A stretch of DNA of 61,731 nucleotides, counting the filler, from Dimorphilus gyrociliatus (lineage: Eukaryota; Animalia; Annelida): assembly GCA_904063045.1 (NCBI GenBank). It is 4 parts of 4 records of this genome, joined end to end, with 100 filler letters (N's around TTAATTAATTAA, not from the genome) between each part and the next. Parts side by side here need not be neighbours in the genome. Positions count along the whole stretch, not along the records: positions 25,787 to 42,555 come from CAJFCJ010000293.1; 3 more parts are not named here. One strand, 5' to 3'. Shown here piece by piece: positions 25,787 to 42,555 of the stretch; position 1 is the first letter of the stretch, and the number at the start of each line of letters is the position of its first letter. The notes beneath the pieces are model-generated. The model saw nothing but the letters and a program-made list of their open reading frames with translations. It was not told the DNA's origin and ran no database searches. The translations under genes and the position numbers were made by a program.

Positions 25787-26310
25787 GACCACCAACCACC
25801 TACAATTGCTTAATACATCTTCCTAAATTATATTTTCGCTTATTCACAGCATTTTCATCAATCTCTATGACTAAACCAGGACCTCCTATTTTAGCTGAAC
25901 TGTCAGATGTAATTTTACTCCTAATTAGCTATAAGACTGTTTTAGAAAGTTTATAGTTTATGTCATATTGCCCAAATATATCTATAATTGGAGTTTTTAT
26001 GGATCATTTAAAGGTTTTAAAATTATTTTTTTTAGTGATGCGTTCATTTTAGTAAAAAAAAAACATCACGAATTGAAACCTTACTTTTACCACATTTCTT
26101 CGATTTACACATCCAAATTAAACCGTCTATATTATGATGTGCTACTAAATTTCTATCAATTTTACATTTTTTACAGAATGATTTTTTTTTCAAAATATTT
26201 AATTCAGACAACCAAGAAAAAAGGTGCTCGGACCAATCATTTTTTCTTGCAATTGCAACTCTGTTATTGACATTAAGGGGGGGTAATATAATTTAATTTT
26301 AAGGGGCCCT
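25787..26310 (-). mobile_element. Degenerate Merlin/ISXO2-like transposase 5' half, truncated by contig start
   Basis: The minus strand reads a Zn-ribbon (FCKKCK..DGLIWMC..SIRDVFF) and KIGGPGLVIEIDENAVNKRKYNLGR, homologous to the Merlin at 39982-41111. Confidence 0.7.
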
Positions 26311-26898
26311 GAAAGCAATTTTTACCCATAATCCTATAGAAAATGTATTTATAGAATTTAAAGCAATAAATAAATAAATATAACGGAAAGTAAAAGAGTC
26401 ATTATATGTTTACAATATATCATAAACTCCCAAGATTTGTAATTTTTGATGAAATATTGAAAGAGTGAATTAATTATTTGGTGGATAAAAAGTCTCTTTC
26501 GATTTATAATTCATTTTTTGGATAAAGATGTTTTGTTTATTTTAATGGTTATATCTATTCAATATATCAAAGCTATAGAAAATAAACCTTGCATTTTAAT
26601 ATTTAATTAGGATATTCCGTAACAAAATACATTTTATAAGTCTTTAGAAACACTGAATTAATAAACTTGCTTTTAAATAATATATTGGTTTATAAATTTT
26701 ATACATCGTTACCAATCTGAACCTATTTAAATTGGTATAGCTTAGTAATAGTATTGTTTTATGAATATAAATTATCAAACTATTAATATAGAATTACTAA
26801 TGAAATATGAATCTTTATGACTGATTTACAAAGAATCAGTAGCGTTTTTTAATCGTAAATACATTCTTTTGTAAAATATTTGGTAAAATAGAATTTAA

Positions 26899-28558
26899 TT
26901 AAATATTGTCTGTTCGCATTTCAAGTATTTTAAGAATGTCCCCTTTTAGTTTTCCTAAACGATCCATCTCTTTCAGATATTGTAAATCCTCTTGGCCCAA
27001 AGGATCTAATATGCAAAATGAAAATGTTTTTAGGGTTCTTAGTGATCTGAAATCACAAATCATATCTTTTGGAATTTTACATCCAAAGAGAGAAAAATAC
27101 TCTACTTTTTTCAGTTGTGATATCGAATCGATTTCTTCAACATCTAATTCCATGTATGCTAAAGATAGATTTTTTAGGTTTTTCAGTTTGTTTATTCCTA
27201 TAAGAGATCCTAAAGGGATCTCAGTTCTATGCATATCTAATTCTTCTAAGCTTTCTAGCTTGAAAAGTGTATTCATATCATTCTCTGTAAGATTTTTACA
27301 AGCTGTTAAGGTCAAAGATTTGATCTTCGTAAGATCTTTCAACTCTGCTAGAAGATCGTTCTTGCTTATAGCATGAAATAAGTATAACTCTTCTAAATTA
27401 GTCATTTTGTTAATTGTTTTATAATCCTTAATACCTAAATCTGGATTGTTAAAAAGGTTCAATCTCTTAAGTTTTTTCAATCCATTTAATGGTATAATTG
27501 TATGCTCTTTTAATAAACAAGCTCCAAGAGATAGAAATTCTAGGTTTTCGAATGTAGATATAACTTCGAAGTGTTTCTGTGTTAGGTTCTCATTAGCATC
27601 TAAATGTAATGTTTTAAGGTCGTTGAGCTTGTTTTTAAAAAAGTCGAATCCAATTTCACTTGGATTACATTTTCTTAAATCCAAGGTAGATAAGTTTACC
27701 ATACTTGATAACTCTGGTAGTCATCATCATTAAATCCTCTTGAAAAGCTTAAATCTAATGTTGAAACGCCCTTCGGCATATCTATATTGTTAAAAGAGCC
27801 AGGAGAAACGTCAGTATCACTTATTTCTATGCATTTCAAATCTGGTAAATAAGATATAATTTGAATATCATTTTTGTTAAGAGGTTTATCAAATGCACTC
27901 ATCTCCAATCGGTTAAACTTTTTTAATATTATGTATTTAGTGTACTCTTCCGGACTTGTTTTCTCAACTTTTATTGAAAGTTCTTTTATTGCTTGTATTC
28001 GTGTTAGCTTTTTTAACATATCTTCATTTATTTCATTATCCAATTCTATATAAACGCTTTCTAAACCTTCTATCAAACTAATACTTCTTATTAGATGCTC
28101 ATTTCCATCAGTATAGTTTATTTCTACGTCTTTAAGTTGAGGTAGCTTTGAAATGGCATCAGATTCTTTTATTGTAAATATATGACGACCTTTCAATTTC
28201 AACTTTTTTAAGTTAGTTAGTTTGTCTATATCGCTTATAATTCCATCTCCATCATCAATAAAAGTCTTTAGAATGAGTGAAGGAGTGTATAATTCATCTG
28301 TAACAACTTTGACGTTCTTTTCGCCTATATTTAATACAACTGCTTGATCTGCAACGTCCTCATGGGAGTATTCTATTTCTAAACTTTCGATACTTTTAAG
28401 AGAGAATTCACTTCCTGGCGGCTTTCATTATCTATGAAGCGTTCTAAGTCTGTGAATAATTCAGCATCATAATTTTGTATAAATTGGCTAGAATAAATGA
28501 CAATTAAATGAATGTAAATTAAAACTGTAGATCTGGTCACCATCTTGTGAAGTTTCAT
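26899..28558 (-). CDS. Putative secreted LRR protein 1 (microsporidian-type), frameshifted in assembly
   Basis: ATG 28558 is preceded by CCCC. A hydrophobic signal-like segment (TVLIYIHLIVIYSS) is followed by ORFs 28379-28600, 27696-28202 and 26899-27702, which carry regular LxxLxL repeats. Adding one A in TTAAAAGT restores the first break. Confidence 0.75.
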
Positions 28559-39981: not shown

Positions 39982-41111
39982 GGTTCATGTGGATTATAGT
40001 GGGCTTTTGAAAATTTTTAAAAATCAAAAAATTAAAAAATTAAAAAAATTAAAAAATTGAATTTTAATTGAGTCCGTCAAATTCGATTTCATAAGCATTA
40101 GTTGATAATAAAATAAACATTTCATTCAATCTTTTAAATTTATCAAACTTTTTAAATCAAATACATTGTAAGAGATAAAAGAATTGCAAATCTTTACAAT
40201 TTGTATGTTTTCTTATATGCCTTTTCGTAACACTCCATAAACATTCAATGTTTTGGGTGTGTATTTCCGGATCATCTGGACTTACAAAGAATCTATCATG
40301 ATTAATAGTATCATGTAGTAGCTCATCTTCTAGCTGTCCCAATGCAGATCTATAGGCTTTCCATTGATCTGTTATAATCTTCGATCCTGGTAAAATATTT
40401 TCTAATATAATATTTTTTATCGTTTGTGTTCTTCTATCAGGAACCTCAATTACAAATATGTTGCTTGTTCCCCGTTCTATTCCTCCTATATACCACCTCT
40501 GTTCTAACAATCTGCCTCTATTATATTTTCTTTTAAAGAAAAGGCTTTCATCCATTTCAACTATAGTAGGTTCTCCATTTTCGTTGATTCCACCTATTTG
40601 GCTTGTATTCTGTTGTATATTATAGGCTATGGCTTCTAAATAATTTTTTCCCATTTAGTTACAGATGCTCGATCTAAACCTGATTCATGTGCTATAACTT
40701 CTTTTTGTACTGCATATAGAAGTTTTTGAATTATTTTTAGAATTGTTTTTAAATTTAAACGTGATTTTAAAAAAAGCTACCATATCTTACTGAGCGTTTC
40801 TTCTTACATATTCGACAGACAAATCTATATCCATCAATAATTTTTATTTCTTTATGTAAAAACATATAAATGCTACAACTATCGCACTTTTGTCGATTAT
40901 TTATTAAACGCCAGCGTGCCATAAAATTAAGTAGGTTTTTTTTATCAAATATTGTTTCAAAATAATCAGAACGTAAATTTGTACTTTTTATAGTAAAAAA
41001 CGAAAATATTTCTGCTTCAGGTATAATATAATTTAAATTTTTGGAGAATGACATTTATTAAAGGGAGGGTCCTTAAAAATTTTCAAAAACCCACTATAAT
41101 CCACATTAACC
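39982..41111 (-). mobile_element. Complete Merlin (ISXO2/IS1016-like DDE) DNA transposon, 1130 bp
   Basis: 39-bp TIRs GGTT(C/A)ATGTGGATTATAGTGGG(C/T)TTTTGAAAATTTTTAA with 2 mismatches and a perfect 8-bp TSD AAATATAG (39974-39981 and 41112-41119). The transposase reads IVEMDESLFFKRKYNRGR, IITDQWKAY and HTQNIECLW. Confidence 0.95.
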
Positions 41112-41475
41112 AAATATAGATTGTGTTGTTTAAGATTTTCTTATTTTATCGCTTACATTTCATAGATTTTTTGTTTTAGGTTAATTTATTGGTCTTCTAA
41201 GAATGCATTATGTTCTTTTATATAAAAATGTGGAAACTAAAAGTCATAAGTATTGTATTTATTAACGATAACTCCCAATTCTTATATAGCTTTAAAAAAG
41301 TTAAATAATACCAAGTTTTATAAAAATACTGTAAAATCAAGACTTTTAACAAATTATAAATAACAAATAAATATCTAACAGCTGTTTAAAAATACTATCT
41401 GAAGATTTAAATAAACTATGGGGGTGCTTATCATAACAATATAAACACAGTTGAATCACAACCACTTTTATTTAA

Positions 41476-42555
41476 TTAAAAATTTCTATAAACATTAAAT
41501 TCCTTGATATTTTTTAGCCTTTTTATTGCATCATAATCGTTTTGGGCTAATCCAGGGTTGTTATTAGTTTGAAGTTCAATTAAATTCGTAAGCTTTTCGA
41601 TACCAACTAAAGAATTCATACTTAGATTACAGCTGTTCAGAATTAATCTTTTTAAATTTAAGAGTTTAAAAACTTTTTTTATTTCAATATGGGTTATTTC
41701 TCTAGAAAAGCTTAGATCTAAACTGGTAAGGTTAGACATCTTATATATTTTGCATAAAACATCGCTATAAAGTGTGCACTTGACCAAGTTAAGCTCTTCT
41801 AACTTATCCAATTTTGTAATGTTATTAAAGGTTTGGATGTTAACTTCTGGAAATGAAAATAAACTCAATGTTTTTAAATTTTGTAATTTATGAAGATTAA
41901 AAGTTGAATCCTTTTCAATACTTAAGCAATTGAATCTTAACCCACTTAATCTAGTTAAATAGCATATTGACTGAAGATCATTTTTACTTAATGTACCATT
42001 TACTTGTATATCTAGCGTTTTTAATCTTTTTAAACGATATATCGAAGTAATTATATTACTCTCCTTTGTATATATTCTAATTTTTAAATGAATCAAACTT
42101 TTCAATTTAGTAATGTGTTCAAAATCATCACTAGTGATATGTTGTCCAATGTCTATCTCTAACTTTTTAATAAATTTTATTGTACTTATATGGAACATAA
42201 CTTTTTTATCCAAACTACAAGGAGATAAAATTAACTCTTTGACATTCTTAAGCTTAGATATGTCTATTAAAACATTTTCAGTAAGGTTTGATTGCAAACC
42301 AAGATCTAATGTTTCTAAATTTACTAGATTATCAAGGTTATTCAGTGTTGCTTGGATACGTCTACTTTTAAAGTACAATTTCTTCAGTAAAATTAAATGA
42401 GTTATGCTTTCTATATCGATAAGGCTCAATTTTGTATTATCATAAAGATTAAGTTCTTTTAGTTTAGTCAGCTTGTCTATATTAGAAAGATAACCTCCTT
42501 TTATATCACTCCTTTGTAGGGATAATATTTCTAGATTACTGAGTTGAGTTATACT
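41476..42555 (-). CDS. LRR protein 3 (same family), 5' end cut by contig end
   Basis: ORF 41476-42429 is a regular LRR array (LDNLVNLETLDL, LVGIEKLTNLIEL). LRR-like coding continues to the linker. Confidence 0.8.
   Translation of the reverse strand, partial: SITQLSNLEILSLQRSDIKGGYLSNIDKLTKLKELNLYDNTKLSLIDIESITHLILLKKLYFKSRRIQATLNNLDNLVNLETLDLGLQSNLTENVLIDISKLKNVKELILSPCSLDKKVMFHISTIKFIKKLEIDIGQHITSDDFEHITKLKSLIHLKIRIYTKESNIITSIYRLKRLKTLDIQVNGTLSKNDLQSICYLTRLSGLRFNCLSIEKDSTFNLHKLQNLKTLSLFSFPEVNIQTFNNITKLDKLEELNLVKCTLYSDVLCKIYKMSNLTSLDLSFSREITHIEIKKVFKLLNLKRLILNSCNLSMNSLVGIEKLTNLIELQTNNNPGLAQNDYDAIKRLKNIKEFNVYRNF

Follow-up and report, generated by a model that had tools for sequence, protein, structure and literature searches.

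Microsporidia are known to have lost the editing domain of leucyl-tRNA synthetase (LeuRS) (PMC7017984), and directly upstream of their start codons stands a CCC-like motif that goes together with very short 5′ untranslated regions (UTRs) and has been used in start prediction (PMC2803860). In Spraguea lophii, a leucine-rich repeat (LRR) protein family is expanded, and most of its members carry signal peptides (PMC3749934). Merlin DNA transposons, for their part, are recognized by terminal inverted repeats (TIRs) of 24–462 bp with a terminal 5′-GG and by target site duplications (TSDs) of 8 or 9 bp (PMC8101967). Here, we compare with these systems a piece of the genome assembly of the annelid Dimorphilus gyrociliatus, namely positions 25787-42555 (CAJFCJ010000293.1) of a 61,731-nucleotide stretch of DNA that is referred to as the window. 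We consider it highly probable that this piece is nuclear genomic DNA from a canonical (long-branch) microsporidian, co-sequenced with the organism of the assembly, and we infer that the parasite infected the sequenced animal. The organism is marine and lacks a close sequenced relative.

The phylogenetic placement of the piece was computed from MCM2 alone, a gene identified by Pfam, by direct reading of its motifs and by a tree. It occupies positions 37322-39625 on the minus strand as a single intact and intronless open reading frame (ORF) of 767 aa. Its product contains the Pfam domains MCM_N, MCM_OB, MCM and MCM_lid, and its zinc finger (C-x2-C ... C-x2-C), Walker A motif (GDPSTAKSQ), Walker B motif (IDEFDKM) and arginine finger (SRFD) are all legible. 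The top-scoring matches among named microsporidian MCM2 proteins, which include those of Encephalitozoon, Spraguea, Vairimorpha, Ordospora and Hamiltosporidium, are 53–59% identical to it, and 59% is the maximum of any match among 5.8 billion proteins. A scan of metagenome contigs returned 557 relatives, of which 0 exceed 53% identity, and a gene-position index gave no exact match to the window MCM2. These ceilings among proteins and metagenome contigs are compatible with the earlier suggestion that the species is possibly undescribed.

In a tree of 51 sequences, calculated with IQ-TREE under the posterior mean site frequency (PMSF) model and with metchnikovellids not included, the window MCM2 falls inside Microsporidia with a support of 100 and inside a clade that excludes Nematocida with a support of 99; true metazoan MCM2 (tick, fish), chytrids, Paramicrosporidium and plants are placed apart from it. 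Specifically, it joins S. lophii, Dictyocoela muelleri and a record labelled Lepeophtheirus salmonis with a Shimodaira–Hasegawa-like approximate likelihood ratio test (SH-aLRT) value of 90, so the nearest sampled relatives, in a weakly supported grouping, are the Spraguea and Dictyocoela lineages. Three MCM2 records labelled as animals likewise nest inside Microsporidia, that of Trichonephila clavata (spider) beside Nosema/Vairimorpha, that of Arctopsyche grandis (caddisfly) beside Vittaforma/Glugoides and that of L. salmonis (salmon louse) near the window sequence. They are probably parasite by-catch annotated as host genes.

The neighbouring gene encodes a cytosolic LeuRS (34678-37203, minus strand; Pfam and alignment to human LARS1). 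Its ATG at 37203 lies on the same strand as MCM2, 118 nt after the MCM2 stop, and with five single-base indels applied it forms one ORF of 842 aa across 34678-37203, compared with 1176 aa in human LARS1. The HIGH motif (as HLGH) and the KMSKS motif are present, and the pieces of the gene are colinear with human LARS1: residues 4–96 of the second piece correspond to human residues 169–261, residues 108–174 of the third to 503–570, and the fourth piece to 573–694. In contrast, human residues 262–502, which make up the CP1 editing domain of 241 aa, are left without an aligned counterpart in the window LeuRS, and the place of CP1 is taken by about 110 residues that are unalignable and carry no Pfam domain. 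The alignment shows the predicted LeuRS to be devoid of the CP1 proofreading domain. A search with the C-terminal piece returned P0127, a protein of a marine eukaryote transcript catalogue (98% identity), and four weak fragments only, with all others at or below 33% identity; P0127 matches the LeuRS C-terminus at 170 of 172 residues.

CCC or CCCC stands 3–15 nt upstream of every one of the five inferred starts on the piece, namely those of LeuRS (37203), LRR gene A (28558), LRR gene B (30387), the Merlin transposase (41054) and MCM2 (39583), against a background of 24 of 308 minus-strand ATGs (7.8%) with CCC within 20 nt. As the choice of the MCM2 start was made with the motif already in view, four of the five starts are unbiased. 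In LeuRS, CCCC occupies positions −9 to −6 from the ATG, and in MCM2 a CCCC motif points to the second ATG, at 39583 (M15), as the more likely start. The original prediction, made from the sequence, had pointed to intronless housekeeping genes set 118 bp apart, to a shortened LeuRS missing its editing part and to CCC before ATGs, and each of these observations holds on the evidence above.

As assembled, LeuRS is split into five ORFs. Contigs of public sequencing runs (coded X1–X8, with organism labels A, B and C) were aligned to positions 34700-39700, and those of X1 and X3 show zero substitutions relative to the window LeuRS and single-base indels at all five frame breaks: each carries an additional T behind 35623, 35997, 36594 and 36935 and lacks a base at 34805. 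All five break points lie in A/T runs, and P0127 continues uninterrupted across 34805. These indels, together with the read-through in P0127, mean that the LeuRS breaks are homopolymer indel errors of this assembly and not decay, as the earlier suspicion of indel errors had it. Low coverage may have caused these errors, as was also suggested; in other runs the organism is deep, with word depths of 62–561x. MCM2 is identical in the X1 contig with 0 gaps and has none of the LeuRS-type indels. Given the LeuRS result, the frame breaks of the LRR genes are probably assembly indel errors too, and the same probably holds for the transposase.

Alternatively, the breaks could be real, such that the LeuRS, LRR and transposase genes are decaying pseudogenes. 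The helicase of a Helitron remnant on the same piece lends this idea some substance, as it has an in-frame stop in Walker A and no Rep domain; since substitution errors seem rare in the assembly, that element at least is truly decayed. Nevertheless, five indels with zero substitutions in 2.5 kb of LeuRS, relative to two independent studies, are unlike decay, and the 34805 site is read through in a marine transcript, so that we regard decay of these genes as unlikely. As a separate observation, X3 alone has an extra T at 37142 (A on the coding strand), which lies in an A-run 20 codons into LeuRS and would shift the N-terminal frame. Strain variation, heterozygosity or an error in the contig may account for it.

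Five of the public runs contain 80–91% of the sampled words; four of them are labelled organism A and belong to one 2020 study, and one is labelled organism B (2017). Word depth ranges from 62 to 129 in X1 (organism A, study P1) and from 104 to 674 in X3 (organism B, study P2). A larger run labelled organism A contains only 0.02 of the words, which is not proof of absence. Under organism C (2019, 2025), pieces with 95–97% identity occur at a depth of 2–4, and two marine metatranscriptomes and one marine sediment metagenome contain small shares of the words. In addition, RNA contigs of X8 match MCM2 and the 3′ part of LeuRS at 98–99% identity. Variation in presence within one label, occurrence under several labels and RNA in seawater together fit a transmissible marine parasite and not host DNA.

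The same observations bear on the idea that microsporidian DNA has been integrated into host chromosomes by a large horizontal transfer, which we regard as very improbable. Nothing positive speaks for integration, although animal-labelled records with a microsporidian-type MCM2 do exist (Trichonephila, Arctopsyche, Lepeophtheirus). The scaffold, by contrast, is free-standing and ends in a Merlin-like remnant on one side and an LRR paralogue on the other, its genes are intact and have kept the CCC start motif, nearly identical RNA is found in open marine metatranscriptomes, and the larger run of the same label is nearly devoid of the sequence, short of proof of absence as that is.

Three further observations concern the run contigs. 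First, the MCM2 contig has about twice the word depth of the LeuRS contig (129 versus 72 in X1 and 561 versus 266 in X3), contig depth being a poor measure, and the X1 and X3 assemblies both break in the 118-bp spacer between MCM2 and LeuRS. Such a depth step could reflect a duplication of MCM2, or hemizygosity or heterozygosity of the LeuRS side if the parasite is diploid or polyploid. Second, another contig matches positions 38157-38227 only, the most conserved 71 nt in the MCM P-loop region, with 7 differences; its flanks are identical in X1, X3, X6 and X8, and it is 2040 nt long in X1 and 1925 nt long in X3. This contig presumably represents the gene of a further MCM subunit in this organism, and its occurrence in four runs indicates that more of the organism's genome is present in all four. 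Third, the marine RNA contig over MCM2 in X8 ends 11 nt beyond the stop codon, and an AATAAA signal overlaps the stop (37311-37324). This end is compatible with very short microsporidian UTRs, bearing in mind that contigs cannot show true transcript ends.

Several points can be raised against assigning the piece to Microsporidia. The classical markers, namely small-subunit (SSU) rRNA, polar-tube and spore-wall genes, were not found on the piece. The adjacency of MCM2 and LeuRS was not found in Encephalitozoon intestinalis, Hamiltosporidium or Dictyocoela, in which MCM2 has other neighbours, so that synteny speaks neither for nor against the assignment. The placement of the window MCM2 within Microsporidia is weak, with a terminal branch of 0.82 changes per site, and a FastTree of 121 sequences recovers the same neighbourhood with no support and with long-branch joins; the contig of P0097, one of the neighbours in that tree, has unrelated genes beside it. 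The long terminal branch, the weak within-phylum placement and the absence of metchnikovellids from the tree leave some room for another AT-rich, intron-poor eukaryote that resembles Microsporidia, with an early-branching rozellid, a metchnikovellid, another fungus or another protist among the candidates; such an origin is scarcely likely, as the window sequence sits above the Nematocida split and far from Paramicrosporidium and chytrids, and as CP1 loss and the CCC motif are canonical microsporidian traits. Constraining the window MCM2 with Metazoa costs 137.6 units of log-likelihood and is rejected by the approximately unbiased (AU) test (p = 6.9e-6). The original prediction had named an MCM2 phylogeny as a check of microsporidian origin, and the outcome bears that origin out.

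On the reading that we prefer, a canonical microsporidian sequenced together with the organism of the assembly, the piece has the organisation typical of microsporidian genomes of the medium-to-large, transposon-rich type. Its housekeeping genes are intronless and tightly set, and CCC marks transcription and start sites just before the ATG. The proofreading domain of LeuRS has been lost, and a lineage-specific, probably secreted LRR family exists alongside Merlin and Helitron transposons.

Three LRR genes lie on the minus strand of the piece. Gene A (26899-28558; Pfam LRR_8, LRR_4 and LRR_14) starts at an inferred ATG at 28558 that is preceded by CCCC and runs through the frames 28382-28558, 27696-28202 and 26899-27702. 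Its paralogue, gene B (29106-30387; Pfam LRR), starts at an inferred ATG at 30387 directly after CCC and contains a frame break between 30217 and 30116. Gene C (41476-42555; Pfam LRR_14) has a frame that is open to the right edge of the piece, which cuts off its N-terminus. Proteins A and B share 47% identity over 158 aa, and C is 24–28% identical to A and B. Both A and B display a hydrophobic N-terminus, with a mean Kyte–Doolittle value over 12 N-terminal residues of 2.33 in A and 1.66 in B, followed by a conserved (D/N)(A/T)ELF stretch; Pfam returned no match on the LRR N-termini. The LRR proteins are probably secreted. The expanded family of LRR genes with signal peptides that had been proposed thus stands as regards three paralogous genes, and its signal peptides narrow to hydrophobic N-termini in A and B. 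A search that is sensitive only to relatives sharing 5-residue words returned six generic LRR proteins with at most 29% identity, none of them from Spraguea, and because no relative exceeds 29%, the family appears to be lineage-specific.

A complete Merlin transposon lies on the minus strand, identified by its DDE_Tnp_IS1595 domain, TIRs and TSD, at 39974-41119 with its TSDs included. The element itself spans 39982-41111 (1130 bp) and is bounded by TIRs of about 40 nt that start with GGTT (inverted repeat of 45 nt at 91% identity) and by an 8-bp TSD, CTATATTT, at 39974-39981 and 41112-41119. Its transposase matches DDE_Tnp_IS1595 (PF12762) with E = 6.6e-12 and is read in two ORFs, 41054-40767 and 40654-40157. 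The element at 39982-41111 thus displays all the defining features of Merlin (PMC8101967), in agreement with its original identification. The transposase ATG is preceded by CCCtCCC (41063-41069), just inside the TIR; the element thus carries a start signal of the host-genome type, which suggests that it has long resided in microsporidian genomes. Cut off by the left edge of the piece, a remnant of a Merlin/IS1595-like transposase, probably a second copy, occupies 25787-26265 on the minus strand, as judged from reading frames and similarity to the complete copy. Its Cys-rich N-terminal part lies at 26047-26265 and the region with the first catalytic D at 25803-25928, and 12 of 26 residues agree with the DDE region in the complete copy; Pfam gave no match on these pieces, which are too short.

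A Helitron remnant that includes an assembly gap is found at 32581-34435 on the plus strand (Pfam Pif1_2B_dom and UvrD_C_2; PIF1 profile). It consists of a Cys-rich N-terminal region together with the putative conserved region upstream of Rep (32800-33153), directly followed by a helicase of the Pif1 type (33166-34435) that carries an in-frame stop as well as frame shifts. The helicase matches PIF1 (profile positions 151–217 at 33573-33749), Pif1_2B and UvrD_C_2. The N-terminal region was recognized only by a feature search leading to Helitron_like_N clusters (score 0.92) and by its motifs, and Pfam gave no Helitron_like_N match. No Rep (HUH) domain was found between the N-terminal region, which ends at 33153, and the Walker A of the helicase at about 33200. 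Judged by these matches, the element would be at most an internally deleted Helitron remnant. Its ends, which in Helitrons are 5′-TC and 3′-CTRR with a subterminal hairpin, were not located in the AT-rich flanks. Of the Helitron claimed at first, a putative N-terminal region and the helicase are retained, in the form of a remnant without a Rep domain.

The assembly gap (33237-33520) interrupts this helicase. On its left flank, a degenerate Walker A is read in one frame as FMFLD-stop-SGGTEKYFLY, where Helitron/Pif1 helicases have FFLDGPGGTGKTFLY; on its right flank, LLGGDFR is followed, after a one-base shift, by QTANIVVNGSK. A distance of 118 codons separates the K codon of Walker A (33219) from the Q codon of GDFRQ (33573), compared with about 110 expected, an expectation that takes its right side from the profile match and its left side from the position of Walker A in the PIF1 profile. 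The two flanks share a strand and follow each other in the expected order. It is plausible that the scaffold join across the gap is correct; continuity and frame are not proven.

In total, positions 25787-42555 comprise 16,485 read bases and the 284-N gap, and their G+C content is about 25% overall with a range of 21–35%. Almost all long ORFs of the piece lie on the minus strand. A scan for tRNA genes, rRNA and other Rfam families found none on 25787-42555, no long direct repeats were found on the piece, and the only tandem repeats are trivial AT-rich ones. Between LRR gene B and the Helitron remnant, about 2 kb (30400-32580) with 21–23% G+C hold small AT-rich tandem repeats and no ORF longer than 70 aa on either strand. 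This region may represent the Helitron's 5′ part, some other decayed element or spacer DNA.

Whether the piece stands for a widespread marine lineage that has never been sequenced as such is, in our estimate, evenly balanced; such a lineage would stand far apart from every microsporidian with a sequenced genome (MCM2 at most 59% identical), would be met with under three or more organism labels and in metatranscriptomes from the open ocean, and would be rich in transposons with a secreted LRR family of its own. Parasite DNA in host assemblies is common, and what is new here is the lineage. We advise marking this scaffold, and probably many more, as non-host, since its genes will otherwise be annotated as animal. 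Few marine microsporidian lineages have genomes, and a near-complete genome of this one could be put together from deep public runs (60–560x) without new sampling; its host range and distribution could likewise be derived from public runs and ocean transcript catalogues. Furthermore, if infection of the culture or animal concerned goes unnoticed, data on its physiology and expression can be confounded.

Compared with known systems, the piece resembles the 28 microsporidian contigs in the assembly of Botryllus schlosseri (PMC12448946), which are likewise marine by-catch, the two being likened by description only. The editing-domain-free LeuRS of Vavraia culicis and other microsporidia (PMC7017984) combines a preserved catalytic core, HIGH and KMSKS included, with a shortened and unalignable CP1 region, as in the window; by contrast, no database protein except the near-identical P0127 shares more than 33% identity with the C-terminal domain of the window LeuRS. 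The Merlin elements of Anncaliia algerae and Nosema (PMC8101967) have DDE_Tnp_IS1595, GG TIRs and an 8-bp TSD in common with the window copy, which differs in being short (1130 bp), in having its transposase in two frames in this assembly and in carrying CCC before the ATG. The LRR expansion of S. lophii is analogous to the LRR family of the window, and as the word search returned no Spraguea protein, the two expansions look independent. Finally, S. lophii, D. muelleri and allied, largely aquatic microsporidia provide the nearest named MCM2 proteins (58–59% identity), from which the window lineage is set apart by an MCM2 only about 58% identical, a long branch and a weak grouping.

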